A stretch of 64,000 nt of DNA from Paragordius varius. Taxonomy: Eukaryota; Animalia; Nematomorpha. The stretch covers positions 12,958,001 through 13,022,000 of the forward strand of contig OZ176054.1 in the NCBI GenBank assembly GCA_964247055.1. Reading direction: 5' to 3'. Under the pieces are notes generated by a model. The model was not told where the DNA came from. It worked only from the letters and a program-made list of their open reading frames with translations, and made no database searches. The position numbers were made by a program, and so were the translations under genes. Each line of letters opens with the position of its first letter. Within the stretch, counting starts at the first letter, position 1. Shown here piece after piece: positions 1 to 64,000 of this stretch.

Positions 1-227
1 GCAGTTAGAAATGTGCTACGATATTTTCCCGTTTCTTTCCATGATACGCTTACCCCTGAATTTATGGAAGAACTTGAAAATAGAGGCCATATATACGCTT
101 ATCGATTTAAACCTCAGATTAGAATGAAGTTTCATATATAAATTCCTATCTTTTAAACAATTTTATAACGTATTATCTAATCACATATAATTTTCGTAAT
201 ATCGCTTAGTAAAAAATTCAAAAATTA

Positions 228-486
228 CAGTAAAAATTAAATACGGACAAAAGGTAAAAATATAAAGACAATTTTTTTTCCAAAAGTACTTTTTAAAACC
301 TTAATGTTTCTCGTATAAGCTACTTAGTGTGTTAGTATTATATATCTCTATTTCACACTTTGCCATTTAAAGCAATGAGTTATATTGAAATAAATCAAGA
401 TTTAAAAAGTATGGTTGTCTTTTGTGGAAAAAAATATTTTTTATATTTTTACGTTTTGTCCTTCCGTATAATTACAATTTTTACTG
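228..486. mobile_element. TA-flanked MITE with ~80-100-bp TIRs (CAGTAAAAATT...AATTTTTACTG), Tc1/mariner-pogo-like; representative copy
   Basis: TA|CAGTAAAAATT at 228 and TTTTTACTG|TA at 486, with inverted TACGGACAAAA / TTTTGTCC(TT)CCGTA blocks. The same element recurs at 2147-2432, 8710-10445 (interrupted), 36001-36286, 37806-38087, 54954-55222, 56921-57215 and as many partial copies. Confidence 0.75.
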
Positions 487-2146
487 TATTTGTAGTTCTT
501 TAATGTATATATATGATAGAGCATATCCTATTCAAGAATACCCAGGAAAATTGTTGGAATGCAAAGCTATCATGGCAATGATAATGAACAATTTGGATCC
601 TGACGTGGCTCAGTTCCCTGAAGAGTTGGTAACCTATGGGTCAAACGGTCAAGTTTTTAGCAATTGGATTCAAGTAATCCATTAAGTTTAAACATTTTAT
701 GCATAATTTTTACTTAACTAAATATATTATTTTTATACAAACAACATCTATTTGCTATTGGAAATATTATATTTAGGTTAGATTTACAATAAAAATTGGA
801 ATTATACGGACAAAATGTTAAAATATAACGACAAATATATTTTTTTAGAAGAAAACCATACTTTTTTAAACTCCATTTCCTAAGATATATCTCATTGTTT
901 CAAAATGCAAATTAAATTTTCAGTTTTTACTGTATATATATTTAAACATTGTTATGAAACAACATTATTTATGGGTAGGTTTAGGTCGGACTGGTTACGA
1001 ATGCAGTTATGATCATGGTAGCATAAGCCATTTTTTGCATACATGTTCACCATATGTTTATTAGTGTAAAAATTGAAATTACACATACAAAACGTAAAAA
1101 TATCAACAAAAGCTCTTATTTGATTTTTAAAATGTAACTCATTGTTTTAAATTGCAAAGTGTGGAAATAGATATGCAAATTAGTAACACTAATTATATAT
1201 TTACATTTGTAATTAAATAATTCAAATAGTGGGATATATTATAACTCAGCGGTAAATTCTAAATAACTAACAAAGAGCCAGTTTTTTTGCCCATCCTACT
1301 TTTTTAAAAACTTTTTAAAACAATTAGTTTAACAAATAAGAGCATTAACTTTTAGATAATCTATGGTTAAATTATTGGGTTCGGCATTTCATAAATATTG
1401 TGTTATATTTAATTTTTTCCACAGTTCTTATTAACTATGAAATATTTGTGTGAAATGGAGAATTATCAAACCTTAGTGTTATGTTCAGGACATCCGCACG
1501 GTTTATTCCCAAACATTTGGAATTATCTCACATGTGAAAAAACGGGGAAATTAGGTCTTTTATAAAATTGACAAAAAATTTATTTTTTTGATCATTTAAG
1601 AATTGTATACGTATACTATTTTTAAACCCCTGCTAAATTAAAGAAATACCGCCAAGTTATCCGCGTTTGATTATTACAAACGGCCTGGTGCTACCAACAT
1701 GTCAGGAATCAGAAAAGCAGCTTGATAGAGCCTACGTTTCAGATTACGAGCGATTATTTGGTTTGAATGTTAGTCAATATGGACAAATGACAGCAGGGAG
1801 TTTTTGTTACATTGGACCTCAGGGTATAGTCCATGGCACAACACTAACTTTGCTTAATATAGCTCGAGCAAATTTTGATGTCCAGAATGTGTCTGATATG
1901 GTGGGTAAGGTAACACATAATATTACAATATGGATACCTTTAAATATGTTTTAAGTGTGGATTGGAGCCGAAATTATTTTGGGTTTAAGTGAAAAATTTT
2001 ACAAGCGGTCATAAAAGAAAAAGTTTTTTCGTATTTTTTACATTAGATTTTTAAACTTACAATTAATATTCTTTTACTTTATTCAAAAAGCAATAGTATA
2101 TTGTTGTAGATATTATAGAGAAGCAAATATTTTGGCTTAAATTATA

Positions 2147-2432
2147 CAGTAAAAACTGGAATTATAAGGATAAAATGTAAATATATAAAGATAAATATTT
2201 TTGTCTAAAAGAAACTATACCTTTTTACTCCATTTTCAAAAATATAACTCATTGTTTAAAATTACAATTCATAAAATTAATATGTAATTGGTGACACAAT
2301 CAATTCTATATTTAACAATTGTAATTAAATAACATATATGAAAAAAATTAAGGTTGGAAAAAGTATGGTTGTCTTTTAGAAAAAAATATTTGTCGTTATT
2401 TACATTTTGTCCTATAATTTTAGTTTTTACTG
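2147..2432. mobile_element. TA-flanked MITE (same family) in urocanase intron 5
   Basis: TA|CAGTAAAAACTGGAATTATAAGGATAAAATG ... CATTTTGTCCTATAATTTTAGTTTTTACTG|TA; equivalent copies at 37806-38087 and 56921-57215. Confidence 0.7.
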
Positions 2433-4843
2433 TATTTTTGCAGCTATTATTCAGATATCTATTAAAAAGTTGTCGAAAAAAGAAAGGTTTAAATATAATT
2501 TTAAAAATCGAAACCATTTATAACCATGGCCAAAATATACTTAGCCTAAGGGACAAATCTAATTAAAACTAGCGCAAAAAACAGTCAAATCCTTATATAT
2601 TTTTTAATTTGTAATAAAAATATGAAAAAATCTTTAGGTATTTGTCTCAAGTGGATTGGGAGGAATGAGTGGTGCACAAGCTAAGGCTTGTAAAATCTTG
2701 TCATGTTTTGGCCTTATTGCTGAAGTAAATTTTATTCCCCCTTTAAATATATACATTTATATATCATGATAAGTTAACTTACCAAAATTTTAGTCATTTA
2801 GTAGATGTTGTATGATTCTTGAGGTAAAATTTATTTAACAATATTCATTTAGATAAATAGTGTGACAGCGCAAAAAAGATTGAATCAAGGATGGTTGGAT
2901 GAAGTGAGCGATGACTTGGATTACTGTATTAACCAAATACGCCAGTATAAACGGGATCTTATTAGCAAATCTATAGCATACTGTGGAAACATTGTGGATC
3001 TTTGGTAAGGACAAATTTACTCCTTTAAATGGCTTCGCGGACCGCATTTGAAAAATAGAGGGGGCATTTATAAATATTTTATTAGATGTTTAATTTTAAC
3101 TTGTGAAAATTGACAAAAATTAATATAATTACTATTTATTTCACCAATTTAGTTTTTGCCGATCGAAAAGATTTATTTATTCAGAATTTTTTTTATGAGA
3201 TATAGATTGTACCAAAATATTATGTGAGCATTCAAAGTGTAGAGTTTGGATTTATTTTGGGATTTTTCCAAATTTTTCGCCGGCCGCAGACAGCATTTTG
3301 CCCTTTTTTATCTAATACTTTTATGCTTACTTACTCGTTTGTTTAGTTGAAAAATCATTTTTAGGGCAAAATTGGCAGAAATATATGAGGAAACCGGTGA
3401 GAAATTAGTCGATTTTGGTTCAGACCAAACCTCTCTTCATAATCCATACAATGGTGGATACTATCCGGTCGGTTATAGCTGGATAGAGGCGAATCAGCTA
3501 TTAGCGACAAATCCTGAACGGTTTCAGAGGGAAGTTTGTCAAAGTTTGATACAGCAAGTCACGCATATAAATAGGTCTTTTCCTAATCCTTTATAATTTA
3601 AAATTTTATTAAACAAGTTTGTTTTTCCTATTAGATTGACAGAAATGACTGGGTTAGTATTTTTTGATTATGGCAATGCTTTTTTGCTTGAAGCTGCAAA
3701 AGCCGGAGCACCAATACACAAGAATAAAAGCGTTGTAGCATGCAATAATTTTGGAGAAATAAATCAAATTGGCGATTCAGTTGAACGGATATATAGATAC
3801 CCATCGTACGTGGAAAATGTAATGGGAGAAATTTTTGCATTTGGGTTTGGGCCTTTCCGTTGGGTATGTATGAGCCAGGATCCAAAAGATCTTGCTTATA
3901 CCGATAAACTTGCGCTTTCCATCCTTAGGGTGCGAATGAATTAGATTCTAAAATATTTCAGTGCCAACAAAAACAAGAGCAGAGTCGCAGCAAAATTGAA
4001 CTTTATGCCCGAATAAAATCTTACTATGTCGATAATTGCTTTTGGATGGAACACATCATTTCTCAACCTGGTGTGGGATACCTCACTGTAGGATCTCTGG
4101 CCCGGATCCTTTATTCAGACGTTCAAGGGAGAATACGACTGGCTTGTGCCTTCAATAAGGCCATCGCAGATGGACACATAACGCAATCGATTGTGTGTAG
4201 TCGAGACCATCATGACGTTTCAGGGGCTGATAGCCCTTGGCGGGAAACAGCTAACGTTCGAGACGGTTCCAACATGTGCATAGACATGTCCATTCAAAAT
4301 GTCTTGGGAAACGCGGCCAGAGGAGCGACTTGGGTAGCCCTTCACAATGGCGGAGGGGTCGGTTGGAACCGTGCAAGCAATAATGGATTAGGTCTTGTGC
4401 TAAATGGGCAACCGGAAACGGAACAACGCATAAAGAATGTTATGATGTGGGATGTATTGAATGGTATGGTACGGAGATGTTGGTCTAATGATTATAAATA
4501 TAGCAACAATGAAATCGATTCTCTCGCCGAAAAACGTGAGACATCATTACCCTTAGGTGAGAAAACGACGTATTACAATGATCTTATAAAGAGTTATTTG
4601 CAAGAACTTCAAACGGATATCAAGGGCTTAAAAGTAACATTACCCTTTGGGGAATAAATCAGAGGAAACTTTATTCAAAAAGATATATGTCTATTCATTT
4701 ATTTGTTACAATAAATATTATATATGATAATAATTAATTGTCATATTATTATAAATATTTTGATGTCATCTATGTGTGTTTAAATAATTGACTATAGTTT
4801 TTATCCTTTTTGCCAAAACAATCACAGATACTCCTTAATAAGA

Positions 4844-5820
4844 TTATGTTTTATTGTCGAAGTGACAGTTGTCATATTTGGAATTTTGACGTGCGACATA
4901 TTTTTCGAATTGGAGTTTCCAATCAACTATATATTTCGTTTTCCAGTCATTGAAGTGTGCTTTCCATTGGATTTCTAGATCACTAAGATCTTCTATTGGC
5001 AAAAATATATTAGTTAAAAAAACATATTGTTTAAAAATATAAAACGAATTGGTTAATCAAATTCTGATTATAAAAATATAGACTTACGTGTAGCTAAAGC
5101 AAGATCGGGCATGAATTCATTCCAAAATGCGCACTCTTTAATGCGCGGACCTCGACCAACGTCAAATGCATCGATGCAATATTCAAATATTCTCTATTAT
5201 GGGCAGTGTGGATGGGCCATTGTATATCGGACCAGGTTCCATCATCATTTATATTTGGATTTCTATTTTTTGCAGAAAAAAGGAAGGATAATTGAAACTC
5301 ATTTGGTTAGTGGTCATATAGTCCTATAAAAAATATTATTTTACCCAGTTTTGCCAAAATTGGTCCAGAATCGCATCATGAGCCAGCTTAATTCAATTTC
5401 TTTGGGTTTATATCCCTTTGAAGGATCTAACGGTTCCCCAAATATGTAATTAATTTCATCGGCATGCATGACACCCATCCAAGATGGCCAGGGGTGAGTC
5501 GATGATCTGTGAGTATAATAGTATTTGAACACATTTGCACCAGATTGGGCGTAGATGAAGGCGCCCATATTGATCCCACAGGTAAAGTAATAATCACCGA
5601 CACTTTTGTCGAACGCATCTAACATTTTCTTGGGGTCCGAGGGATCCTCCCAATGCGTATACTCATAGAGTATGGCTTTTCGACCAATTTGATTAAATTG
5701 TGGAAATAATTCGGGTAAGGCTTTAGCAAAAACGTGTCGATCAACGGTAACCGCCCTTTCTAACGGGATAAATAGATTCGTTAGCTGATAAATGTTAAAA
5801 TATGTGTCCACGTCGAAATT
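4844..5820 (-). pseudogene. ACHE: Acetylcholinesterase 3' fragment, unit A (exons 5820-5345, 5262-5088, T/WAT exon 4992-4844)
   Basis: [29 protein letters not shown] (catalytic His), FWTNFGKTG|NPN, GPRIKECAFW, then the WAT-like tail DLEIQWKAHFNDWKTKYIVDWKLQFEKY. No N-terminal half was found. 1-nt deletion in the middle exon; the DEG of the other copies reads DVD here. Confidence 0.9.
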
Positions 5821-6630
5821 TTATATGGGTCTCCGCAACTCAGAGATTTTAAGTTAAAATTAAATCTTATATTTCATAAAGTAATTTTTATATCATTGAA
5901 AGCGTTTTTAATATTCCTTGTCCGTATTTGAGAATCATAAATTAAAATTAAGTAAGAATACAAATTTTTTTTTAATTATCTAATAATATCTATATATGAT
6001 AACACAAAGGAACATCTATATTAAAATTAAACTTCTGTGATATTCGATAATTATTTTTAACAAAAAAAAAATTTATATAGCAATATAATAAATAAATTTT
6101 GGCAATTATCATTGTGGTGCACATTTCTTATTTATAGTTGCGTATGAAAAGAATAAAAAATGTTTTAAAAAAAACAAAGGAATATTTATAGGTTTATTTA
6201 ATTAGGGTTGTTTGTCAAAAAAACATTTTATTATTCTTTTCTGGACTAATAATGTTTTATGCCATACGCTACTATATGTATGCACAACATTACATATTCG
6301 CTTAGGAATTATATTTTTTGTATTGTTTGTTAAATATGGCACGTGTGGGTCTTTTAAAGCAATTTTTTACCTGTACATTTTTTTGATGAGACTTCTGGAG
6401 TAAAATATTATTGATTATCAATTTTAGAAGTCATTGAGTCAATAAAAGTTAAAAAATCAAAATATATCTATACATTGTTTTTACACACCTGTTTCAATAC
6501 AAAGTGTTTGTGTATGATTTGGTGTTAAAAATATAATGGAAATGTTTCAAAATCAAGAATTTTTTTAAACAATAATTTTATTTATTTTCAATTACATCAC
6601 AGAATAGAGGACATTAAATGAATCCATAAT

Positions 6631-9600
6631 TCAATCATTAGAGTTTTGGGGTCTAAAACAAATACATAAATTTGTCATGAAGGGGGATGTGTTTGATTTA
6701 TTTTTCGATTTTTTGACATTTTTATTGTTGTTTTCTCCAAATTGATGTTTAGAGCCTTCTGGAGGAGTCTTGAACTTAACGCGTGATCCAATATTATCTT
6801 CTTCACTACAAAAAAAGATTCATAAAAATCCCTATAAAATTAGAGATCGGAACCGTCATAAACCAATACACGGTTTTTGGATTTTTCAATATAGCTTTAT
6901 TGTTTATTCAATATAATTTTGGATTTTCAAATATAGCTTTTTTTTATTATGTTACATGGTATGAACATACGGTATAAATTGAGATTATACGGATAAAACG
7001 TAAAAATATTTTTTTAAAAGACCGCTGTACTTTTTAAAACTTTATTTTCGACATAAATCATTGTTTGTATATTTGTAGTATGTAAGAAAGATGTAAATTG
7101 GAAGCAACAATCAATTAGGATTTTGAAATTCTATTGAACAACCATTTTTGGCAAAACTATTCTGAATCTCATAAAAATCTCAAACAGAATAAAAGTCAAT
7201 TAATTACATTTATACATTTTGAAATGACATAAAAAATGTGTTTCAATAAGTATATTTCACTTTCCAACTTATACTTTGGAGGTAGAAAAGGGGTTTTCAG
7301 ATGTGTTTTTTATTTATACCACTGAAAAATTAAGGTAAGCTTTAAAATTAAAATAAATGCAATTCTACTAGTGGATCAATCAAATAGAGTGAGTGCGATT
7401 GCTAAATAACCTTATACTATTCGTTTAAAATAATGGAGATAAGGACATGACTTTATTCAAATCATTATTAATGATTGCTATTTTCTCCATATTCTCATTT
7501 TTCCAATATTTACGTCCATTTCTATCCATTTTAATTATAACTAATTCCCTTTACAAGATATTAGTATTTATATATTCATACCTTACAAGCTCATCACTTT
7601 TCATTGGATTGTAGAAGGGAAATCCTGTTCAAGTCCACCCACACTCCGATCTAACATAACAGCTCTTGAAGTGAAATCTTCAAATCCGGATTCTTCTTTA
7701 GCATGCATTTTTTGTTGCTGTTGTTGCCTTTTATTGGCAAAAAAATCCATGTAATTTTCATCATGTCCAACCATATTGTTGTCTACATTATTCATGTTTT
7801 GCCCGATTAAATTTTTATTTGCAGGTGTTACTGGCCATGCTAAATCACTCGATGCCGATTGGCCTATTCGTTTTTCATCTAAACCCTGTTTTTGTTTTAT
7901 AATTTTAAATGAATATCTTACAAAAGGATATTTAAAATTTTCTTTAGTTAGTTATTCAACAAATATTTTTTAATAAAAAATCCAAAGTTTATTTGGCACA
8001 AAGCCTATGTAAGTTGGAAAGCAAAGTGTTCAGATGGGTTTAGTTAGAGATTGGATATATTAGTGTACCCTAGTTTACAGACTATTAAGTTGAGAGTTTT
8101 AATTTAAAAATAGAAAAACTATATTTAAAGGGCTTTGAACCAGAACTGCATGAAACCAAAACTGGTGCTTAACTTTTCAACAGAAACAGGTTTCGTTGGG
8201 TTTAGGAACCACCCCGGTTTCCTTTTTAAATTCCCAGTTCTAGTTCCACTTTTTTTGAACCGATTCGAAGCCCTGATTAAAAGCTTTTATTCTGCCTACC
8301 AAATTTTGCATATCTTGTTTCACATCATCGGCATAGTAATAGGCGGAAGAAGAAATGTTTGATGGTTTTGGTTCCATATTGGTTGTCGATATTTCTGGCG
8401 AGGGTGGCAACTTACCTGTCCAATCAAACATGTAATCATATTCCCAACCATAGTTTTGCAATAATGTTTCAAATAACTGTTTAAGGTAGGCATAATCTGG
8501 CGTTTCGACAAAATCAAGGCCCCTGGCATAACGAACCAAAATTTTGAATTCTTCGGGCAAACCCGAACATAGAGTATCCGGATCAATATCTCGTTTCATT
8601 TCAGCAATCTTACGGTATTTTTGTTTAGAGGATTCGGTTTTGATTAACTTTAAGCCTGGACTTGTGGATATTGCATCAAAAATATATTATAGATTTTGGA
8701 TAAATTTTACAGTAAAAATTAAAATTATACGGAAAAAACCCAAAAATATAAAGACAAATATATTTTTTAAAAGACAGCCACTTTTTTTAATCTTGAATTT
8801 GTAAATTTTAAGTATGATATAAAATATGTAATTGATAACACAATCAATTACATTTTTTAAAATTTGTATATAAATAATTTATAAAATTTATAGATTTAAA
8901 AAGTATGGTTGTGTTATGCAAATCTGAAAGATATACTTTATTTTTATATCATAATTTTCTGAGTTACATGCAAATGTGAAATACATACCTCGGTTGTATA
9001 TCATAACTTTGACCGTTATTTGAATTGTATTATTTTTTATATTTTTTGTGTAATATGTAAATATTATAACCTTTTTTACTTTAAATTTTATTGATATAAT
9101 GCAAATTATGTACAACTGAAATTACTATATAAACCCTAAAAAAACCAAATGAAAAATTCAGTTCATTTCACATTTCTTATATTATCTCTGTTATCTTACA
9201 AGATAACATTGGTGGCCAAGACGAGTACCGAACTAATCTAACAACTAATCTAACACAACAGTGGAACCTCCGGGTTCCAAACTCGGATGGTGGAGATAGA
9301 GTCCAAAGTGCAATAACCATGAAAATGTCAATTGCCAATATCACCAGCATGTCCATTAAAAAATATAATGATAATACCAATTATAGCAATGGTAATAATT
9401 TTAATCGATCACAACAAAGCCTCGGACAATTCGCGCAAGGGTTATGGGAGTGTTCATAAGCAAATGTACCGCCTACCGCAATTGCAAATGCGGAAAACCC
9501 AACCACTTCGCTAATGTAGAAAAAAAAACACTGCCAAAAATATGTTCAACCGCCAGTGCACTGAAAGCGAACGGGCTAAGAATCTATAGCGACCTTGGAA

Positions 9601-11953
9601 TCTTTATCAACAAATGGCTGGGGAGGACTCCCACATCATTCAACATTTGATGGATGGGTAAGTAAGATTGGCGCGGACAAGCTTGTAATAAGATTGATCA
9701 GTAAGACGCCTACCTCCCCAGGCCGAGCTAAAGCTACACCCTCGACGATTCAACAATAAGAAGATGTGTCAGTTACAAAAGGACACTGTTCAGATTCCTT
9801 ACAGCGCCGATAGTATTTCAGTGCGCCTGGACCAATTTAAAAGAAATGGTCTAGGGTGGCATGAGGCAGAGATCAAATGAAACACGTCGCCACACATAAC
9901 ATAGGATGTTATCTTTCAAACCAAGATTCGTCGACACACCGCCAAATTTAAGACACCGGTCACTCAAAAAAGTAGTAATGATAACATTAATAGCAATAAT
10001 GACAATATCAATGTAAATCCGCACGAGCGTCGTTACCCCGAGAGAATTCGGCGGAATCCGGTCCGGTTCTCTTAAGGGGGAAGTGATGTTATGCAAATCT
10101 GAAAGATATACTTTATTTTTATATCATAATTTTCTGAGTTACATGCAAATGTGAAATACATACCTCGGTTGTATATCATAACTTTGACCGTTATTTGAAT
10201 TGTATTATTTTTTATATTTTTTGTGTAATATGTAAATATTATAACCTTTGTTACTTTAGATTTTATTGATATAATGCAAATTATGTACAACTGAAATTAC
10301 TATATAAACCCTAAAAAAACCAAATAAATAATTCAGTTCATTTCACATTTCTTATATTATCTCTGTTATCTTACAAGATAACAGGTTGTCTTTTAGAAAA
10401 TATTTGTATTTTAACATTTTGTCCGTATAGTTTCAGTTTTTACTGTATATGTAAATATATACCTTGCCAGGGCAAGGAACCCTTTAGAAAATATAGGAAC
10501 ATGTAGGCAAGTCCTTCAAGATCATCCCTTCGACTCTGTTCTATTCCAAAATGCGTGTTAACGGACATATATCGGGCAGTTCCAGTCAATGGTTTCTGTT
10601 CACGGTACTTTATATGTTTATCTGATATACGAGATGAGTTGACAATAAAATTTAAATTTTTATTTTCTATTAGTTACTAAAAAATGAAAGTAAACAGACA
10701 AAAACCTAAAAATATAAGGACAAATATTTATATCAAAAGATAACCATACTTTTTTAAACCGTAAGTTTTCCCACATATACTATTTAATAATATTTATTTC
10801 AAAAGACAACCATAGTTTTTTACACCGTATTTTTCCCACAAAAACTATTTAATTTAATAAAACAATAACTGTGTATCCAACTTACATGTCTATTTCAGAC
10901 TTTGTGGTTATAAACAATGAGTTATATTCGAAAAAATCAAGGTATGAAAAAGCTTGGTTATTTTTTGAAATTACGTTTTGTCCGCATAACTTATTTCATT
11001 TTTACTGTGAATTTTGTATATTAGCTGCATACCATTTTTATCGATGTATTCTTTGGCTAATCCAAAATCAACGACCCATATAATTCCCTCAGTGGTGTTA
11101 GCCCGTTTCCCAATCAAAAAATTTTCGGGTTTCACATCCCGATAAACTAACCCATAGTAATGTATAAATTCGATTCGATTTATCAATTGTATAGCAATCA
11201 TAATCACTGTTTTAAGACTAAACTGTTTATTGCAGTACAGAAATAGGTCTTGCAGACTGGGCCCTAACAAGTCCATCACCATAACGCGATAGGAACCACA
11301 GTGACCAAAATAATATACGCGGGGTATACCTTCGGCATATATCCCATACCTAAAATTAGAAATATTCGTGGACAAATATAATTGTCTAAATTACACAAAA
11401 TTAAAGTTATAAAAACAAAATGTAAAAACATAATTTTGAAAACGATAGCTTCCTAAGATTTTTTTAAATTAAATTTTGGGTGGTGAAATATGGAATAGCG
11501 AAATAAATTCGTTAACACTCCTTATGTTTTTAATTTTTACTGTTAATAGAAAGACCAAAATTTTCATTTTTACTATCAGACATTAAGTTAAATATTCTAC
11601 CTTTCATCCTGGTGCAGTCGACTGTACAATTCATATTCCCGTTTTAGTTGAGGGATTTCAGCATTTTCCGCCTCAATTTTTATGGCAGCTAAAGTCTTTG
11701 TAGCTATATGGATGCAATATCGCAGTTCACCGAACGTACCCGAACCAATATGCTGAGCGATTTGATATAGCTTTGGGTTATTTTTTATGTTGGCGCCGTT
11801 TGATTTGGAAAAACGATCAACACCAACTATACGACCCTGTAATTTGTCTTTTCCGCCACCATGCTGCGTTTCGGAGGAATTGATATTAACGCTATTATTG
11901 GAATGCTTAACACCTATGTTATAATAAGGGTCTTCGGTTTTCCCGGGACTCAT
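6631..11953 (-). pseudogene. CSNK1G: Casein kinase 1 gamma copy 1 (exons 11953-11601, 11349-11033, 10621-10463, 8655-8300, 7885-7582, 6805-6631); kinase domain open, 1-nt deletion at 7627/7628 gives a stop at 7603-7601
   Basis: [66 protein letters not shown]; last exon ends [12 protein letters not shown]. Exon 5 is 304 nt versus 302/305 nt (3n+2) in copies 2 and 3. It may still encode a truncated active kinase. Confidence 0.85.
8912..10383 (+). mobile_element. Non-autonomous, internally deleted Ty3/gypsy-type LTR element: 297-bp LTRs 8912-9208 and 10087-10383, 5-bp TSD GGTTG
   Basis: LTRs start TGTTAT and end ATAACA. GGTTG lies at 8907-8911 and 10384-10388. PBS-like TGGTGGCC at 9210; PPT AAGGGGGAAGTGA before the 3' LTR. 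Internal relics of a gag knuckle (KCTAYRNCKCGKPNHFANV) and a pol tail (RRYPERIRRNPVRFS*). At least 4 LTR differences seen. Confidence 0.92.
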
Positions 11954-19900: not shown

Positions 19901-19960
19901 TTGCAAGAACTTCAAACGGATAACAAAGGCTTAAAAGTAACTTTACCCTTTGGTGAATAA
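13975..19960 (+). pseudogene. UROC1: Urocanate hydratase copy B, full length (exons 13975-14112, 15483-15613, 15980-16133, 16726-16855, 16939-17204, 17940-18026, 18156-18307, 18670-18879, 18943-19960); single premature TAA at 19832-19834
   Basis: Exon 1 MAEYLKFISVGIPLNPLPPPY...RAPFRNNGLTEREKT joins LAVKNVLRYF, matching the eukaryotic urocanase N-terminal extension. All splice phases are consistent. GAA>TAA removes the last 42 codons, which stay in frame up to the original stop at 19958-19960. Confidence 0.88.
14585..14940 (-). mobile_element. Putative non-autonomous Helitron-like insertion in urocanase B intron 1
   Basis: GC-richer block absent from units D and E. The minus strand ends GGGCTGCGTAGCAGCACG-AGATTTACG-CTAG|T, a GCTGC/GCAGC hairpin ~10 nt before CTAG. 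The 5' end is approximate. Confidence 0.5.
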
Positions 19961-20275: not shown

Positions 20276-20280
20276 ATTGG

Positions 20281-21723: not shown

Positions 21724-21989
21724 AATGTTTTGAACAGAGAGATAAGTTAAAATAATTTAATTAAAAGCAATAAAAGAATTATCAATATATGCGTGAGAGA
21801 GAAACGTTTTTTAAGCGAAAAAATAATTTTGCACTTTTTGAAGGGAATACCTACCTCATAATGTTTTATCTTGATCTCATTTATATAATTTTTATATTCT
21901 TTTAGGGATTAGTGCGTAAATTGCTGAATAATCTTACTTGACGCTTGTTATTATTTTTTCATAATTTAAATTTAATTTTCAAAAAATCA

Positions 21990-22077
21990 TATAGGCGCCC
22001 CTAAATAACGGCGCCCGGGGCATGATGCACCCCCTTGCCCCCCCCCCCCCCCCCCCCCCCCCATCGGTACGCCACTG
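21990..22077. mobile_element. Right end of a CAGTGGCGTAC-type DNA transposon with a C25 tract
   Basis: GGCGCCCCTAAATAACGGCGCCCGGGGC...C25-ATCGGTACGCCACTG ends exactly where urocanase intron-3 homology resumes (TAACAAACAGCCA). No matching left TIR is present in the window. Confidence 0.6.
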
Positions 22078-33367: not shown

Positions 33368-33406
<39 letters not shown>

Positions 33407-50429: not shown

Positions 50430-50467
<38 letters not shown>

Positions 50468-53201: not shown

Positions 53202-54888
53202 GACTGATGTGAATTTAAGTCAGTAAGATAGTAAGACGGTAAGACAGAAAGATAGTAAGACGGTAAGACAGTAAGATAGTAAGACGGTAAGACAGTAAGA
53301 CAGTAAGCATAAGACAGTAAGATATTTGTATAAAAAACATACATTCGTGATAAGTCTGCTAATAGGAGACTTATCAAAATTTCAAAGTATTATAACTTGA
53401 AATTGCATCTTTTTGAATTCTGTAAACTGGAGGATTGAAAGTCAGGTATCCTTTACAAATAATATATAGGGTTGAGTGAAAATGCGTAATTCTTTCGACA
53501 CGAAACTGAGTTTACTAAACACCTCCAAAAATTGTATAAATCTTAAAAAATATATAAAAAATCTTGGGTATTATAGAAGAAAATGGCATCTATACCATTG
53601 TTTCTTATTTGGTAAATATTTTTTTTATATTTTTACAGTTTTAACAATTTTTTTTAAAAAAATTGTACTTTATGGTTCTGACAACAACAAAAATAAATAT
53701 AGCTAAATATTATTATAATAAATTTGAATTTTGTACTCTAAAATCAGCTTTTAACCCGATAATAACCGTTTTCCCCTAAAATTTTACATGCAGAACGATA
53801 TCAGATCCAGGGAAGTTTTGGTGGAATTTCTTGAAAAGTAAATTATTAATAAATATATAGATTTCCAATAGATAAGAGACAGAAGGACACTCATTTATGG
53901 TCTGATCGTTAATGCCTGAGCCTATGGAATCTACATATATATTTCAATGCAAATTACTTAATATATAAGCAGCTGAAATTCCCTCATCACAATCATTGGA
54001 TTTATTTTTACTAAATTTATTTAAGGATAAAATTTTTTGTTTGTTTCATTTTTTGCAAAACTTTTTAATCGTATATTTAATATTAGTAAACATCTTCTGT
54101 AACTGTTTTAAGTTCTCGCCATCATTAACTTTTGTTATATATTCACTAAACAATAAATCCCATTGATCTTTGTGCATAACTAAACTGTTGGATTTTCTAG
54201 AATATAATATTGGAAATCTATATATTTATTAATAATTTACTTTTCAAGAAATTCCACCAAAACTTCCCTGGATCTGATATCGTTCTGCATGTAAAATTTT
54301 AGGGGAAAACGGTTATTATCGGGTTAAAAGCTGATTTTAGAGTACAAAATTCAAATTTATTATAATAATATTTAGCTATATTTATTTTTGTTGTTGTCAG
54401 AACCATGAAGTACAATTTTTTAAAAAAAAATTGTTAAAACTGTAAAAATATAAAAAAAATATTTACCAAATAAGAAACAATGGTATAGATGCCATTTTCT
54501 TCTATAATACCCAAGATTTTTTATATATTTTTTAAGATTTATACAATTTTTGGAGGTGTTTAGTAAACTCAGTTTCGTGTCGAAAGAATTACGCATTTTC
54601 ACTCAACCCTATATATTATTTGTAAAGGATACCTGACTTTCAATCCTCCAGTTTACAGAATTCAAAAAGATGCAATATTTTTCAAGTTATAATACTTTGA
54701 AATTTTGATAAGTCTCCTATTAGCAGACTTATCACGAATGTATGTTTTTTATACAAATATCTTACTGTCTTATGCTTACTGTCTTACTATCTTACTGTCT
54801 TACCGTCTTACTATCTTACTGTCTTACCGTCTTACTATCTTTCTGTCTTACCGTCTTACTATCTTACTGACTTAAATTCACATCAGTC
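53202..54888. mobile_element. Foldback-like palindromic element, 1687 bp: arms 53202-53870 and 54208-54888, spacer 337 bp
   Basis: The arms are near-perfect reverse complements (termini GACTGATGTGAATTTAAGTCAG). They carry a subterminal GTAAGAYR octamer array and a GATAAGTCT-N9-AGACTTATC hairpin. Absent from intron 2 of the other copies. TTT on both flanks is a candidate TSD only. Confidence 0.9.
54046..54290 (-). CDS. Small spliced Myb/SANT-like ORF (66 aa) inside the foldback element; exons 54290-54241 and 54196-54046
   Basis: A 44-nt GT-AG intron joins MQNDIRSREVLVEFLEK to KSNSLVMHKDQWDLLFSEYITKVNDGENLKQLQKMFTNIKYTIKKFCKK*. The W...QLxKxxxN(I/L)K...KK spacing resembles Myb_DNA-bind_5 domains. 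Assignment is by pattern recall only. Confidence 0.5.
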
Positions 54889-57800
54889 TTTATCTTGTTA
54901 TATATAATTATAATAATTTTCTTAATATCGTTAAGTTAAAAAATTAAAAATTACAGTAAAAATTGAAATTATACGGACAAAACTTAAAAATATAAAGACA
55001 ATTTTTTTCTAAAAGACAACCCTACCCATATAAGCTACTTAATTATAATTGTAAAATATATGATTGTGTTTGTATTATATATCTCTATTTCACACTTTGC
55101 CATTTAAACCAATGAGTTATGATGAAATAAATCAAGATTTACAAAGTATGGTTGTCTTTTGTGGAAAAAAATATTTGTCTTTATAATTTTAAGTTTTGTC
55201 CGTATAATTTCAATTTTTACTGTATTAGTAGTTCTTTAATATATATATGATAGAGCTTATCCCATTCAAGAATACCCAGGAAAATTGTTGGAATGCAAAG
55301 CTATAATGGCAATGATAATGAACAATTTGGATCCTGACGTGGCTCAATTCCCTGAAGAGTTGGTCACCTATGGGTCCAACGGTCAAGTTTTTAGCAATTG
55401 GATTCAAGTATAACCATCCATTATTATACGGAATAGTTTTAACATTTTATGCATAATTTTTATTTAACTAAATGTATTATTTTTATACCATTTTGACAAA
55501 AACAATCTCAATTTGCTATTAAAATGTTATATTTAGGTTGAATAAACAGTAAAAATTGGAATTATACGGACAAAATGTTAAAATATAACGACAAATATAT
55601 TTTTTTAGAAGAAAACCATACTTTTTTAAACTCCATTTCCTAAAATTTACCTCATTGTTTCAAATTGCAAATTAAATTTTCAGTTTTTACTGTATATATA
55701 TTTAAACATTGTTATGAAACAACATTATTTATGGGTAGGTTTAGGTCGGACTGGTTACGAATGCATTTATGATCATGGTAGCATAAGCCATTTTTTGCAT
55801 ACATGTTCACCATATGTTTATTAGTGTAAAAATTGAAATTACACATACAAAACGTAAAAATATCAACAAAAGCTCTTATTTGATTTTTAAAATGTAACTC
55901 ATTGTTTTAAATTGCAAAGTGTGGAAATAGATATGCAAATTAGTAACACTAATTATATATTTACATTTGTAATTAAATAATTCAAATGGTGGGATATATT
56001 ATAACTCAGCGGTAAATTCTAAATAACTAACAAAGAGCCAGTTTTTTTGCCCAACCTACTTTTTAAAAACTTTTTAAAACAATTAGTTTAACAAATAAGA
56101 GCATTAACTTTTAGATAATCTATGGTTAAATTATTGGGTTCGGCATTTCATAAATATTGTGTTATATTTAATTTTTTCCACAGTTCTTATTAACCATGAA
56201 ATATTTGTGTGAAATGGAGAATTATCAAACTTTAGTGCTATGTTCAGGACATCCGCATGGTTTATTCCCAAACATTTGGAATTTTAACACATGTGAAAAA
56301 ACGGGGAAATTAGGTAATAAACTCTTTTTATAAAGTTGATAAAAAATTTATTTTTTTGATCATTTAAGAATTGTATGCGTATACTATTTTTAAACCCATG
56401 CTAACATAAAGAAATACAGCCAAGTTATCCGCGTTTGATTATTACAAATGGCCTGGTGTTACCAACATGTCAGGAACCAGAAAAGTAGCTTGATAGAGCC
56501 TACGCGTCGGATTACGAGCGATTATTTGGTTTGAATGTTAGCCAATATGGACAAATGACAGCAGGGAGTTTTTGTTACATTGGACCTCAGGGTATAGTCC
56601 ATGGCACAACACTAACTTTGCTTAATATTGCTCGAGCAAATTTTGCTGTCCAGAATGTGACTGATATGGTGGGTAAGGTAACGCATAATACTACAATATG
56701 GATACCTTTAAATATGTTTTGAGTGGGTATTGGTGCCGGAATTATTTTGGGGGTGTTTAAGATAAATATTTTACAAACGGTCATAAAATAAAAGTTTTTT
56801 AGAATTTTTATCATTAAAATTTTTCAACTTAATATTAATATTCTTAGTTATTTCATTCAAATACCAATAGTATATTGTTGTGGATAATATAGAAAAGCAA
56901 ATATTTTGGCTTAAATTATACAGTAAAAATTGGAATTATACGGACAAAATGTAAAAATATAAAGATTAATATTTTTTCTAAAAGAAACCATACCTTTTTA
57001 AACTCCATTTTTAAAAATATAACTCATTGTTTTAAATTACAATTCATAAAATTAATATGAAATTGGTGACACAATCAATTCTATATATATATAACAGTTG
57101 TAATTAAATAGCTTATATGAGAAAAATTAAGGTTTGTAAAAGTATGGTTGTCGTTTAGTAAAAAATTTTTGTCGTTATATTTTTACGTTTAGTCCTATAA
57201 TTTCAGTTTTTACTGTATTTTTGCGGCTATTTATTCAGATTCCTATCAAAAAAGTTGAGACATTGGCGGTTTGACCATAATTTTAAAATTAAAACCATTT
57301 ATAATCATGGCCAAAATATATTTAATCAAAGTACAAATCTATCTAATTAAAACTATAGCCAAAACAGGCTTCAGAATTCCTTTAAATTTTCTAATGTATT
57401 GCATAAAAATGAAATAGCTTTTTTTAAAAAAAAATCTTTAGGTATTTGTATCAAGTGGATTGGGAGGAATGAGTGGAGCTCAAGCTAAGGCTTGCAAAAT
57501 TTTGTCATGTTTTGGGCTTATTGCTGAAGTAAAATTTATTCCCCCTATGTTTATATATCATGATAAGTTAATTTACCAAAATTATTTAGTAGATATTATG
57601 ACTCTTGAGGGAAAATTTATTTTATTAACAATATTCATTAGATAAATAGTGTGACAGCGCAAAAAAGATTGAATCAAGGATGGTTGGATGAAGTTAGCGA
57701 TGACTTGGATTACTGTATTAACCAAATACGACAATATAAACGGGATTTTATTAGCAAATCTATAGCATACTGTGGAAACATTGTGGATCTCTGGTAAAAA

Positions 57801-59348
57801 CGGGACAAATTTGTTCTTTTATGTAGAAAACGTACATGCATTTTTGTTTTACAGCTAAAAAAAATAATGTTTAGGGCGAAATTGGCAGAAATTTTTGAGG
57901 AAACCGGTGAGAAATTAATCGATTTTGGTTCTGACCAAACCTCTCTTCACAATCCCTACAATGGTGGATACTATCCGGTCGGTTATAGCTGGGATGATGC
58001 AAATCGATTATTGGCAACAAATCCTGAACGGTTTCAGAGGGAAGTTTGTCAAAGTTTGATACAGCAAGTCACGCATATCAATAAGTTTTTTCCTAATTAT
58101 CATCTAATTTGAAATTTTATCAAACCAAGTTTATTTCTCCTATTAGATTTACAGAAATGACTGGGTTAGTATTTTTTGATTATGGCAATGCTTTTTTGCT
58201 TGAAGCTGCAAAAGCTGGAGCACCAATTTACAAAAATAGCGATATAGGATGATAATTTGGGAGAAATAAATCAAATTGGCGATTCAGTTGAACGGATTTA
58301 CAGATACCCATCCTATGTGGAAAATGTAATGGGTGAAATTTTCTCATTTGGGTTTGGGCCCTTTCGTTGGGTATGTATGAGCCAGGATCCGAAAGATCTT
58401 GCTTATACCGATAAACTTGCGCTTTCCATCCTTAGGGAGATTGCGAATGAACTAGATTCTAAAATACTTCAGTGCGAACAAAAACAAGAGCAGCGCAGCA
58501 AAGTTGAACTTTATGCCCGAATAAAATCTTACTATGTCGATAATTGCTTTTGGATGGAACACATCATTTCTCAACCCGGTGTGGGATACCTCACTGTAGG
58601 ATCTCTAGCCCGGATTTAGTCCGACGTTCAAGGGCGAATACGACTGGCTTGTGCCTTCAATAAGGCCATCGCAGATGGACACATAACGCAACCGATTGTG
58701 TGTAGTCGAGACCATCATGATGTTTCGGGGGCTGATAGCCCTTGGCGGGAAACAGCTAACGTTCGAGACGGTTTCAACATGTGCATAGACATGTCCATTC
58801 AAAATGTCTTGGGAAACGCCGCCAGGGGTGCAACTTGGGTAGCCCTTCACAATGGCGGAGGAGTTGGTTGGAACCGTGCAAGCAATAATGGATTAGGTCT
58901 TGTGCTAGATGGAAAACCGGAGACCGAACAGCGCATAAAGAATGTTATGATGTGGGATGTATTGAATGGTATGGTACGGAGATGTTGGTCTAATGCTTAT
59001 AACTATAGCAACAATGAAATTGAGTCTCTCTCCGAAAAACGTGGGAAATCATTGCCCTTAAATGAGAAAACGACGTATTACAATGATCTTATAAAGAGTT
59101 ATTTGCAAGAACTTCAAACGGATATTAAGGGCTTAAAAGTAACTTTACCCTTTGGTGAGTAAATTAGAAGAAACTTTATTCAAAAAGATATATGTCTATT
59201 TATGTATTTGTTACAATATATATTATATATGATAAAATTAATTTCCATATTATTATAAATACTTTGATGTCATCTATGTGTGTTTTAATAATTGACTATA
59301 GTTTTTATACTTTTTGCCAAAACAATCACAGATACTTCCTTTATATGA

Positions 59349-60343
<995 letters not shown>

Positions 60344-60484
60344 TTATATGGGTCTCCGCAACTCAGAGATTTTAAGTTAAAATTAAATCTTATATTCAAA
60401 AAGTAATTTTTATATCAGCTGATTTAAAGCGTTTTTGATATTCCTTGTCCGTATTTGAGAATTCTAAATTAGAATTAAGTAAGA

Positions 60485-61106
60485 GACACTGGACGCAACC
60501 ATGGAGAATTCTCCTCCGGGCTAGAATGCAATCAATGACAATGCTGGATAGTGGCTTTGCGCTGGCTGAGGCTAATGGGACGAATTGGGAAGATTGATAC
60601 ACTACTCTGGAGACTGCGCAGAACCAATAGCTGGCAATCAATAGGGCATGGCTGTCTGATCTTGGATAGTCACCCGTAGAGTGATGGCATTAACTACACT
60701 ATACAATCTTCTGCAAGGGTCTCCTACTGGGCTCTACGACAACCTCACTGTATGCCTTTGCCATTCCCGGCATAATTATAGGAGCGCTTGGGGATGTCGC
60801 GTCAGGTAGGCAGAATTGGCTTCGCAGAGATTGTGTAGCTGTAGCAGTTTGTGTAGCCTTAACAGATAGGACTTATTTGATTACCTTTATTAACTTATTA
60901 TTATTAATTTATTTTGATTTATGAACATTTATCCATAATTGACATTTACTGATTTATTTTTGGCCTTAAACTATAATTTAATGTTGATCTCGTTTTGGCT
61001 TTGCCAGACGGTTTAAGTGACAATAACCCATTGGGTCAGCCGTAATCATAATAACTTGTTACCATTAATTTATGAGAGGGACACCTCCTATGATACGTTT
61101 TGCATT

Positions 61107-61151
<45 letters not shown>

Positions 61152-61303
61152 GTTCCATTGAATATCTTTGTTAGAAGCCCTGAAGAATGGTTGACGTCCC
61201 CCTGCCCTGAGGCGCGTAAAAGCGTAGGAAGGCGGTAAGGATCGTCCTGTGCGGACAGTTACGGTATGGAGCAAGCCTGTCACACCCTTTTCTGGATACC
61301 TGG
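60485..61303. mobile_element. Unclassified 819-bp insertion with 11-bp TSD ATTAAGTAAGA
   Basis: TSD at 60474-60484 and 61304-61314; single copy at the empty site in the other units. Both ends are GC-richer, with a central (TA)n at ~61102-61138. No TIR, LTR or intact ORF recognised. Confidence 0.75.
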
Positions 61304-61697
61304 ATTAAGTAAGAATACAAGTGTTTTTTTAATTATCTAATAATATCTATATATGATAACACAAAGGAACATTTAATTAAAATAAATTCAATCTCTGTAA
61401 TATTAGATAATTATTTTTAACAAAAAAAGATTTATATAGCAATACAATAAATAAATTTTGGCAATCATTATTGTGGTGCACATTTCTTATTTATAGTAGC
61501 GAATGGCATTAAACAATAGACCGTAAAAGAATAAAAAAATGTTTTTTACAAAACAAGGGGATATTATGGATAGGTGTATATACAACTAGGGTTGTTTTTA
61601 TAAACACATTTTTTATTCTTTTATGGACTAATAATGTTTTATGCCATACGCTACTGTATGTATGCACAACATATATGCGCTCAGGAATTATATTTTC

Positions 61698-62902
61698 TGT
61701 TGTTGTTGAGCTTGTAGTCGGTTATCGACCATTAGCGATTTTGTAGGAAAACCTCCTCCATTCGGTTCTGTCGTGAGCTTTTTGAGATAGTTTTTGCAAT
61801 GACAATTTGGAAAGTGATAATATTTCGTCTACCCAGCGAATACGTCTGCGTCCTCTTCCTCTCTTACCATTTACTTTTCCTAACATAATATCCTTTTCCG
61901 AAGAATTGCCCCGAATAATGTGTCCAAAGTAACCGAATTTTTGTTTTATTATTTTACCCCGAAGCGTTGTTTGTGCGTTAATTTTATTTACAATATCGAT
62001 ATTCTTTATTTTGTCCTTCCATGTTATACCAAGTATCTTTCTCCAGCAAAACATTTCAAACGCGTTTATTCTTTTTTCGTCTTCACTTTTGATAGTCCAG
62101 CTTTCACACCCGTATAACATGATAGGAAAGATTAATGCATTTACTAGTCGGATTTTTGTTTTAAGGGTTATGTCATGAGATTTCCATAACTTGTAGTGTG
62201 AGGATAGAGCGCATTTGGCGATAGCTATGCGTCTTCTTATTTCTTGGGAACTGGAGCTTAAGTTGTTGATAATGCTTCCAAGGTATGTGTATTCGTTGAC
62301 TACTTGAATTGTTTCGCCATTAATCCGAAGCGAGTCATAGGAATGAGGGGAGTTGATATGTAAAATTTAGTTTTGTTGAGGTTTAATGTAAGATTGTATT
62401 TTTTGCACACATTTATAAAAGTTCGGAGACTGTTTTCGAGGTTTGTTTGTGAATTTGCTAAGATAACCGTGTCGTCTGCGTAGTGGAGAGTCGTCAGAGT
62501 ATGACCCCCTACTTTTATTCCTGGCAGATTTAGATCCCTCATGATACATTCCAAATATATGTTGAACAACATGGGGGATAAAATGCAGCCTTGACGCAGA
62601 CCTATGTTCATTGGGCTCCAAGAGGTTGGGCCATGCGGGGTGTTAAGTGATAGGTAGGAGTTGGAGTATATGGATTTAATTAGTTTTATTAAGTGATCGG
62701 AAACTCCTATTTGTTTAAGGGCCTTCCAGAGAATGTCATGTTGAACGGTATCAAAGGCTTTAGAAAAATCCACGAAACATAGGTGTAGCTCATTTTGGAA
62801 TTCACAGTTTTTTTCCATTATCCATCTAAGGTTTGAGATCATGTCTCGGCATCCTCTTTTTTCTCTAAAGCCTGCCTGTGTCATTGATATTTCCGGTTTG
62901 AC
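61698..62902 (-). mobile_element. 5'-truncated RTE-clade LINE (RT domain), one frameshift near 62355, (CAA)n 3' tail
   Basis: QAGFREKRGCRD, FVDFSKAFDTV, GLRQGCILSPMLFNIY, LHYADD, YTYLGS, MLYGCESW, GKRGRGRRRIRW; ends CTCAACAACAACA. No clear TSD. Confidence 0.92.
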
Positions 62903-63198
62903 AAATATGGCACGTGTGGGTCTTTTGATATAATTCTTTTTTTTACCTGTACATTTTTTTGATGAAACTTCTGGTATAAATATTATTGATTATCAATTTT
63001 AGAAGTCATTGAATTATCAATAAAAGTTATAAAATCAAATATATATCTATATATTGTTTAGCCTGTTTCAATACAAAGTCAGTTTATGTGGTATTAAAAT
63101 TATAATATAAATCTTTCAAAATCAAGAATTTTTTTTAAACAATAATTTTATTTATTTAATTACATCACAGAATAGAGGACATTAAATGGATCCATAAT

Positions 63199-63367
63199 TC
63201 AATCATTAGAGTTTTGTGGCCTAAAACAAATGCATAAATTTGTCATGAAGGGTGATGTGTTTGATTTAGTTTTCGATTTTTTGACATTTTTATTGTTTTC
63301 GAATTGATGTTTGGAACCTTCTGGAGGAGTCTTGAACTTAACGCGTGATCCAATATTATCTTCTTGA
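63199..63367 (-). CDS. CSNK1G: Last exon of CK1-gamma copy 4 (rest of the gene beyond the window)
   Basis: AG|T CAA GAA GAT ... [12 protein letters not shown]; 169 nt, which is an in-frame 6-nt deletion relative to copies 1 and 2. Confidence 0.85.
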
Positions 63368-64000
63368 CTATAAAAAAGATTTAAAAAAGTTTCCTATAAA
63401 ATTAGAGATCGGTACCGTTAACTAATACACGGTTTTTGGATTTTCAAATAAGCTTTATTCTTTATTAAATATAAATTGTTTGGATTTTCAAATATACCTT
63501 TATTCTTTATATTATGTCACATAACATAGGGTATAAATTGTAATTATACGGAAAAAACGTAAAAAATATTTTTTTTACAAAAGACCGCTGTACTTTTTAA
63601 AACTTTATTTTCGACATAAATCATTGTTTGTATATTTGTGGTATGTAATAAAGATGTAAATTGGAAACAACAATCAATTAGGATTTTAAAATTTAATTAA
63701 AATAATTTATATAGGATAATTAGGGTTTACAAAAGTATGGTGTTTTCATAAAAAGACTCTCATTATATTACGTTTTGTTTGTATCATTTTTGGAGGTTAT
63801 TAGGCTCTATATAAATCTAATAAAAGAACTATTTTTGACAAAAAAAAACTATTACGAATCCCATAAACAATCCCACTTTCCAATCCCAGAATAAAAATCA
63901 ATTAATAGTATTAAAATTTTGAAATGACTTAATGAGTTTCAATAAGGAAATTTTATTTTCCTTAAAAACTTATAATCAACTAAATGCCATTTTACTAGTA

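Follow-up and report, generated by a model that had tools for sequence, protein, structure and literature searches.

A 12-unit array of a CK1-gamma paralogue, urocanase and headless acetylcholinesterase copies sharing one intragenic breakpoint in Paragordius varius

Introduction

Amplifications of ace-1 acetylcholinesterase (AChE) genes are familiar from mosquitoes and spider mites under insecticide selection, where the whole ace gene is repeated in copies that are near-identical and recent. Tandem duplications of the NAHR type that truncate a boundary gene repeat one founding junction in each unit, with a partial gene copy at each junction and the intact gene at one end, and their units become mosaic and undergo birth-and-death decay. 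The locus described here has all of these NAHR-type features and, like the insecticide-type amplifications, involves an ace-1-type AChE locus amplified together with neighbour genes; it is an ordinary, well-documented kind of gene amplification. A literature search on the trio of CK1-gamma, urocanase and AChE found nothing.

The window analysed, 64,000 nucleotides of the nematomorph Paragordius varius (contig OZ176054.1, positions 12,958,001 to 13,022,000), covers one part of an array of 12 units (U01 to U12, the last being the rightmost) that spans 185 kb at C5:12,891,604-13,076,608. Each unit, 13-21.6 kb in length, carries a divergent CK1-gamma paralogue on the minus strand, a urocanase gene on the plus strand and the 3' part of an ace-1-type AChE on the minus strand. 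The original prediction, made from the window, was right about the existence of the array, whose full extent is three times that of the window.

Results

Self-comparison of the window gives multi-kb matches of 84-93% identity (E = 0), far above chance, and the features that it contains are collected in Table 1. The predicted start codons of the kinase copies (11953, 32811 and 49878, minus strand) and of the urocanase copies (13975, 34847 and 51937) all hold. The units are 8-15% diverged from one another, with a JC distance of 0.21 in introns and a dS of 0.15-0.21 between units, which amounts to about 0.2 substitutions per neutral site. All of the longer units contain private inserts, some of them from dispersed TE families. 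Because of this neutral divergence and the private transposon insertions, the units appear to be old and not an artefact of assembly, and the sequence makes it very probable that the array is a real, old tandem segmental amplification, started by one founding duplication and then grown to 12 units. No Rfam families or tRNAs were found in the window.

Table 1. Features of the window, with positions counted from its first nucleotide
Feature	Position (strand)	Structure	Remarks
U05 urocanase	1..4657 (+)	E2 (part) to E9; Urocanase_C on 4046-4657	Pseudogene; 4-nt deletion in E9
U05 truncated AChE	4844..5820 (-)	D 4844-4992, C 5088-5262, B' 5345-5820; COesterase profile 330-472 on 5341-5811	1-nt deletion in C
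Junction U05/U06	5812..5835 (-)	AChE mid-exon to CK1-downstream spacer; ~12 nt filler	In-frame TAA; from alignment of 11 junctions and the array ends
L-block	5822..6020 (-)	200-bp spacer segment beside junction	Unique to array
U06 CK1-gamma paralogue	6631..11953 (-)	6 exons: E6 6631-6805, E5 7582-7885, E4 8300-8655, E3 10463-10621, E2 11033-11349, E1 11601-11953	1-nt deletion in E5 shifts frame
Unit-private insert, U06 CK1 intron 3	8913..10402	1.5 kb	Flanking 297-bp direct repeats (98.7%)
U06 urocanase	13975..19960 (+)	9 exons, 743 codons	In-frame TAA at codon 702 (19832-19834)
Dispersed foldback-like repeat	20277..22158		Many genomic copies at 75-87% identity, often head-to-head pairs
U06 second, partial urocanase	22194..26277 (+)	E4-E9 only	1-nt deletion in E6
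Private insert in U06 second urocanase	22931-24038	1.1 kb
U06 truncated AChE	26454..27414 (-)	D 26454-26602, C 26659-26834, B' 26939-27414	All 266 codons open
U07 CK1-gamma paralogue	28235..32811 (-)	E6 28235-28409 to E1 32459-32811	553-codon frame open
U07 urocanase	34847..40065 (+)		In-frame stop at codon 639; AT for GT donor after E8
Young LTR retrotransposon	40605..44262 (-)	266-bp LTRs 99.6% alike; gag-protease-RT-RNase H frame of 1061 aa	In exon C of U07 AChE piece
U07 truncated AChE	44259..44910 (-)	B' 44435-44910 and rest of C	In-frame stop at codon 47
U08 CK1-gamma paralogue	45578..49878 (-)		555-codon frame open
U08 urocanase	51937..59162 (+)		Stop at codon 192; 2-nt deletion in E9
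Palindromic element	53202-54897	Intron 2 of U08 urocanase
U08 truncated AChE	59349..60343 (-)		Multiply broken: stop, +1 indel, GA donor
U09 start	60362..64000 (-)	Spacer with two private inserts, then CK1 E6 63199-63367
U09 private inserts	60485-61303; 61708-62895		Reverse-transcriptase fragment in the second

The junctions of the window lie at about 5821, 27415, 44911 and 60353. It had been claimed that AChE homology opens at the same codon in these four, and this is true of all 11 internal junctions of the full array, which in an alignment that included both array ends share one breakpoint and filler (...GTTGC GGAGACCCATA TAA/AAT TTC GAC GAG GG...). The breakpoint falls in AChE three codons ahead of the catalytic Glu. 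The distance from junction to CK1 stop, put at 0.7-0.8 kb once inserts are removed, is 810 bp in U06 and 667 bp in U08; U09 has 2846 bp here, which falls to about 840 bp after subtraction of the two private inserts (819 and 1188 bp). At the left edge of the array the kinase-side (L) sequence is joined to unrelated DNA and homology stops at the same GTTGC. The right end has the AChE side only, and here homology runs beyond the breakpoint through the remainder of the large exon, with the GESAG serine, and on into the N-terminal exon. The full-length AChE was thus found where it had been predicted, at the right-hand end, and is the only one on C5, and none of the units has AChE 5' exons inside it. 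The L-block is 93-95% identical among interior units and 71-81% in the left-edge copy (outermost 200 bp); it is conserved only where it adjoins an AChE piece.

Identical junctions, left edge and right end are all as expected if a single duplication cut AChE in mid-gene, and they support the ancestral order CK1-gamma(-), urocanase(+), AChE(-) as well. With both ends of the array still in place, the founding event is directly legible: it would have been one tandem duplication of about 13 kb in a region with that order, its left end about 0.8 kb downstream of the last kinase exon and its right end in the middle of the large AChE exon, creating one novel junction. Homologous unequal exchange between units would then have led to 12 units and the remnant of a 13th, keeping one complete AChE at the right end and giving each unit a whole kinase, a whole urocanase and a headless AChE 3' piece. 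The units would later have diverged, gained private transposon insertions and deletions, and swapped blocks of sequence.

Growth by unequal exchange is inferred from its end product, and it fits with two observations: blocks of variants are shared mosaically between units, including non-adjacent ones, and inter-unit distance does not rise with separation (rho = -0.09). Neighbouring informative sites are also more compatible than permuted ones in both CK1 and urocanase (0 of 1000 permutations). Block sharing and this permutation are the evidence for exchange on which we rely; the contrast between shared and private variants and the four-gamete counts were set aside as proof of old selection or recombination, because both can arise on a star-like tree when fast sites are hit in parallel.

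Among the CK1 subfamilies, the array kinase resembles gamma more than alpha, delta or epsilon. Its best solved relatives in the PDB are CK1 gamma-3, -1 and -2, and human CK1 gamma-3 gives exon 2 a score of 149 bits, Drosophila Gilgamesh 129, and delta, epsilon and alpha 106-112. Exons 1 and 2 match positions 1-54 and 60-153 of the Pfam Pkinase profile, with YRDVKPEN and DFG motifs in the translation, and exons 4 and 5 have no CK1gamma_C match at E <= 1. A far better conserved CK1-gamma exon, which aligns with human gamma-3 at 140 bits over 75 aa, is present at C5:3.57 Mb, and there is a further gamma-like gene at C5:2.0 Mb; the predicted subfamily was right, but the array copies are an extra divergent paralogue and not the canonical orthologue. 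A sixth, terminal exon (E6) lies inside the unit, with its own stop codon and then AATAAA ahead of the junction. Seven of the 12 copies are open (U01, U02, U05, U07, U08, U10 and U11). The copy of the rightmost unit is frameshifted, so the terminal unit cannot be the working one for all three genes.

In the urocanase, Pfam matches follow exon by exon in the order Urocanase_N (2-58, 86-127), Rossmann (1-25, 29-59, 98-173) and Urocanase_C (2-187), with a GLGGMSGAQ motif in exon 6. A profile search of the genome placed every urocanase match inside the array and none elsewhere; a search for related loci with a bacterial urocanase as local reference was without a match. Only one of the 12 units, the rightmost U12, has an open urocanase, and to judge from the reading frames urocanase function now seems to rest on this copy. 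The second, partial urocanase of U06 is probably what remains of the 13th unit, because its divergence from the first copy equals that between separate units.

The AChE at the right end matches positions 4-141 and 141-472 of the COesterase profile (4-472 overall), and GESAG, FDEG and GVMHADE in its translation provide the complete Ser-Glu-His triad. Its best PDB match is the AChE of Anopheles gambiae (E = 3.6e-118), and its best database relatives, up to 57% identical, are named acetylcholinesterase. The N-terminal exon is single-copy on C5. The truncated copies begin at residue 187 +/- 2 of the 346-aa large exon, after GESAG, except for a few that start deeper in the exon or are interrupted by lesions; all 11 lack the catalytic serine and the N-terminal half, and the array holds no copy of exon A. 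Two of the 11, in U06 and U10, are fully open.

Disabling lesions are most frequent in the AChE pieces, intermediate in urocanase and fewest in the kinase, with about a four-fold range of density among the three genes of the same units. Exon indels are in frame in 22 of 27 cases in CK1, about 19 of 27 in urocanase and 3 of 14 in the AChE pieces, and 13% of intron indels are multiples of three. The lesions differ from unit to unit. Assembly error was rejected as a source of the frameshifts, none of which lies in a homopolymer run and which are accompanied by 4-, 5- and 9-nt changes and nonsense substitutions. That the kinase has the fewest disabling lesions suggests that its extra copies are tolerated or useful as dosage; the description of the locus as a CK1 array with passengers is fair as to what stayed intact, though not as to a selective driver.

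The best conserved parts of the unit are the exons of the AChE pieces, which are 95-97.6% alike, their two short introns being 74-87% alike. Even pieces that cannot be translated vary mostly at silent codon positions: dN/dS is 0.13, and two-fold third positions show 24 transitions and 3 transversions, where neutral change would give a transition share of 0.40. A purely neutral fate of the AChE pieces fails to explain this exon-specific conservation and the filtering of variants at the amino-acid level. A mutational artefact was ruled out as the cause of the third-position excess, as wrong reading frames give dN/dS of 0.95-2.0, under the mutation spectrum derived from introns the three codon positions should contribute equally and N/S should be 3.6-3.8, and third-position transversions that change the amino acid are depleted at two-fold sites only. 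Two further explanations, conversion that runs one way out of the full gene and indirect selection via conversion into it, would both be rejected on simple rate arguments.

Discussion

The silent-site signature could be a product of exchange in a highly polymorphic population: the array copies would have been captured recently from very divergent working alleles of the terminal genes, or would be mosaics with such alleles, and would decay only after capture. We regard this as a serious possibility, somewhat short of an even chance. The same filtered pattern is seen in all three genes, in broken and unbroken copies alike, and private lesions number only one to three per broken copy. The full-length AChE, a mosaic as the fragments are, shows the smallest number of private changes (2 synonymous, 2 nonsynonymous), and in private N/S ratio the intact urocanase copy does not differ from the broken ones. 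By our reasoning, simple models with a one-trunk snapshot or one-way conversion predict omega >= 0.5, and several parallel working lineages would therefore be needed. However, capture of this kind requires a silent-site diversity of about 0.15-0.2 together with fast turnover of the array, both of which are assumed, and it leaves unexplained the likeness of the non-coding L-block (95%) among interior units and the four-fold contrast in lesion density.

Alternatively, the headless pieces may be working genes, now or until recently, transcribed from the L-block and making a non-catalytic protein, predicted to consist of the Glu/His half of the esterase fold and a tryptophan-rich tail. The contrast between exons and introns, the dN/dS and the transition excess would all follow, as would the splice sites of exons C and D, kept in nearly all pieces, the two fully open copies, and the restriction of L-block conservation to sites that abut an AChE piece. 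But the junction has an in-frame TAA and an in-frame ATG comes no earlier than codon 66, yet filtering in codons 1-64 (omega about 0.27) resembles that in the remainder; nine of the 11 pieces are broken, with indels that look neutral (11 frameshifting, 3 in frame), and no upstream exon with ATG and donor is visible in the L-block. We thus find it improbable that the pieces have been working genes, and it is similarly doubtful, from sequence features of this kind, that modules and L-blocks would together form an expressed and selected non-catalytic family, born at the junction and partly decaying.

Assemblers can mis-join arrays with conserved 1-kb stretches (95-97%), and haplotypes or collapsed repeats might have been chained in tandem. 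This is very unlikely given the divergence and unequal lengths of the units and the TE insertions and lesions private to them; both array ends are structured exactly as a real duplication predicts, and two haplotypes cannot yield twelve distinct units. Splicing of CK1 exons to the downstream AChE tail exons, for which the E5 donor and the exon C acceptor are compatible in phase and the two genes suitably placed on one strand, is rejected as hardly credible, since the kinase has its own conserved terminal exon, stop codon and AATAAA upstream of the junction, and since B', which would be intronic, is conserved and filtered like C and D.

With the array taken as a real and old amplification, the locus is a clean and fully resolved case of one intragenic breakpoint propagated through an array. 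All of the animal's urocanase copies lie in it, with only one intact, as do seven intact copies of an extra CK1-gamma paralogue, and the predicted main synaptic AChE gene lies next to 185 kb of recombining repeats, in which its 3' half recurs. The array may also serve as a test bed, in that unused coding copies vary as if they were still read as protein, and it offers a known age marker in its edge and three genes of different fate.

Compared with other NAHR-type arrays, this one has three unrelated genes per unit, including all urocanase copies of the genome, and it has kept 12 units despite its age of about 0.2 substitutions per neutral site. In contrast to the insecticide-type ace-1 amplifications, only the 3' half of AChE is repeated, the complete gene being single, and the copies are old (dS of about 0.15), with 9 of 11 broken. 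As in concerted-evolution families with pseudogenes (Ohta-type models, the opsin and Y-chromosome ampliconic arrays), the copies exchange sequence and purifying selection is visible in their variation, but in this array even untranslatable fragments show the filtered variation.

Array extent and junctions

The region analysed, C5:12,860,001-13,122,000, takes in the window and its flanks (262 kb on contig C5) in a genome assembly of 110.6 Mb in 44 contigs. The window, C5:12,958,001-13,022,000, has a G+C content of 30%; it shows multi-kb direct matches of 84-93% identity when compared with itself, and landmark searches place twelve such units (U01 to U12 from left to right, 13.0-21.6 kb each) between C5:12,891,604 and 13,076,608. 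Gene identities come from Pfam and PDB searches with single exons; gene models rest on splice signals and open frames, with exon borders predicted from splice signals and homology, and the joined translations were used for frame checks, dN/dS and one local tblastn search of three loci in this genome. In the left flank, in the intervals C5:12,862,105-12,865,188 and 12,878,592-12,882,410, lie a Wnt-like gene (motif CKCHGVSGSC) and frames that by eye look like PDZ domains; the array is thus set in ordinary gene-bearing DNA.

The alignment of the 11 internal junctions is exact to the base. Read in the sense of the acetylcholinesterase (AChE), on the minus strand, the spacer ends in GTTGC and is followed by a filler of about 12 nt with an in-frame TAA and then by AAT TTC GAC GAG, encoding N-F-D-E, the last residue being the catalytic Glu of the esterase triad. 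In the leftmost unit the spacer side is common up to the same GTTGC, with unrelated DNA beyond, and at the right end of the array the AChE side is common and runs on upstream into the remainder of a 346-aa exon with GESAG, preceded by a 243-aa N-terminal exon whose beginning resembles a signal peptide. The complete AChE that the original prediction had placed at the right-hand end is therefore present, and the N-terminal exon occurs only once on C5, so that the units contain no AChE 5' exons; the start codons first noted for kinase and urocanase and the junction codon also proved exact.

Genes of the unit

In a whole-genome search the large AChE exon has one full copy on C5 and 11 truncated ones, nearly all of which begin at residue 187 +/- 2, while a few start further in or are split by lesions. 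Each of these headless AChE pieces (minus strand; Pfam COesterase profile positions 330-472 only in the window) consists of the 3' 159 codons of this exon, exon C, and exon D with a tryptophan-rich tail; two of the 11 are open (U06 and U10) and the other nine are broken. The full C5 protein is at most 57% identical to database proteins, its best relatives being hexapod ace-1 proteins (Limulus 55%, Priapulus 52%, a horsehair worm 51%), and a second AChE-like gene, 48% identical, is found on contig C1. In addition to the C5 gene, cholinesterase-like genes lie on C1 at two places, 10,065,089-10,066,525 and 10,502,321-10,504,859; the first, an uninterrupted frame of 666 aa that is 48-52% identical to the C5 AChE, may be an ace-2-type paralogue.

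Exon 2 of the kinase (minus strand) is nearest to human CK1 gamma-3/-1/-2 and Drosophila Gilgamesh. Its sixth and last exon, recognised by its conservation, lies in the "spacer" some 0.7-0.8 kb away from the junction; it ends in 13 residues (not shown) and an AATAAA comes after it, so that the unit holds a whole kinase gene. Its frame is open in seven of the twelve units (U01, U02, U05, U07, U08, U10 and U11) and broken in U03, U04, U06, U09 and U12, with two exons deleted in U04. The array kinase is distinct from the canonical, highly conserved CK1 gamma gene, which lies at C5:3,569,592-3,571,800 (about 3.57 Mb) and has a far better conserved gamma exon; another gamma-like paralogue lies at C5:2,009,200-2,010,700 (about 2.0 Mb), both being 9-11 Mb from the array on the same contig.

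The urocanase (plus strand; N, Rossmann and C domains by Pfam) has 9 coding exons and about 745 codons, and all urocanase Pfam matches of the genome fall within the array. Only the U12 copy is open; three others have a single stop, and the remainder have frameshifts or missing parts. A 13th, partial copy (E4-E9) follows a foldback-like repeat in U06, the repeat sitting exactly between the complete and the partial copy. Since the partial copy has diverged like a separate unit, U06 probably consists of two old units that a deletion fused. One non-exonic block, in urocanase intron 2 of U12 (C5:13,071,731-13,071,990; window about 15720-15979), is 94-97% alike across units and overlaps a short repeat that recurs in inverted orientation at other places in the array.

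Private transposon inserts distinguish most of the longer units. The LTR retrotransposon has a copy on contig C2 with 100% identity over its last 2.9 kb; other copies carry, between query positions 729 and 737, about 630 bp that the window copy has lost in an internal deletion. The insert in the kinase intron may be a small terminal-repeat element.

Inserts and repeats in the window, and the L-block, a spacer segment of about 200 bp (window positions)
Feature	Position	Location	Remarks
Young LTR retrotransposon	40605-44262	exon C of an AChE piece	LTRs 99.6% identical
Dispersed repeat, foldback-like	20277-22158		genomic copies often head-to-head pairs
1.5-kb private insert	8912-10383	kinase intron	direct repeats of 297 bp at both ends, 98.7% alike
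1.7-kb palindromic element	53202-54897	urocanase intron 2, U08	arms 97.9% alike
L-block	5822-6020; 27416-27620; 44912-45110; 60354-60484 plus 61304-61386	kinase side of every internal junction	

Age of the units and exchange between them

Whole-unit distances are 0.09-0.15 throughout and bear no relation to separation along the array; intron distance between units is 0.21, and dS is 0.21 for the kinase, 0.17 for urocanase and 0.15 for the AChE pieces. No lesion lies in a homopolymer, and each is confined to one unit, apart from a 5-nt deletion that U03 and U04 have in common; by our count, disabling lesions per kb number about 1.5 in the AChE pieces, 0.6 in urocanase and 0.35 in the kinase. 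Blocks of variants are common to non-adjacent units in changing combinations. In kinase and urocanase the compatibility between adjacent informative sites exceeds that after permutation (0/1000 permutations), an excess that the permutation test did not find in the short AChE piece.

Filtering of variation at the protein level

Median identity is 0.946 in exons against 0.873 in the rest of the unit. Identity is highest in the exons of the AChE pieces (0.95-0.976), while the two short introns of these pieces are at 0.74-0.87. Pairwise dN/dS is 0.10 for the kinase, 0.18 for urocanase and 0.13 for the AChE pieces, as against 0.95-2.0 in wrong reading frames. Indels are in frame in 22/27 cases in the kinase, about 19/27 in urocanase and 3/14 in the AChE pieces, where most indels shift the frame; 13% of intron indels are multiples of three. 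With a neutral N/S expectation of 3.6-3.8, from the mutation spectrum of intron singletons, private variants have an N/S of 1.05-1.27 and shared variants 0.15-0.53, a contrast that parallel hits at fast sites may partly explain, for which reason a test within codon positions was used. The share of transitions among changes is 49-57% at four-fold third positions, against 40% under neutrality. At two-fold third positions a transversion alters the amino acid, and there the share of transitions is 82%, 69% and 89% (in the AChE pieces, 24 transitions and 3 transversions). An amino-acid-level filter has therefore acted on the variation, AChE pieces included. In these pieces the junction brings an in-frame TAA and codon 66 is the earliest place for an in-frame ATG, yet codons 1-64 are filtered like the remainder.

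Two explanations for this filtering remain. The units may have captured very divergent working alleles recently, or be mosaics with such alleles; alternatively, the AChE pieces may have some kind of expression. Expression would fit the L-block, which occurs only in the array and has 93-95% identity between interior units, whereas the copy at the left edge (C5:12,891,614-12,891,774), with no AChE piece adjoining it, is only 71-81% alike; the same contrast also fits an edge effect on homogenisation. By simple rate arguments, repeated or continuous copying from one functional lineage would give a dN/dS of at least 0.5, and selection that acts indirectly, by way of conversion into the full AChE, would need a silent diversity above about 0.3.

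Comparison with known systems

Among the papers searched, none mentions the trio of CK1-gamma, urocanase and AChE. The locus is of a known kind, a tandem segmental duplication that truncated the gene at its boundary, from which we infer expansion by non-allelic homologous exchange, and its evolution by exchange and birth-and-death is likewise of a known kind. It is no ace amplification of the insecticide type, since only one AChE here is complete and the repeat copies are old and broken.
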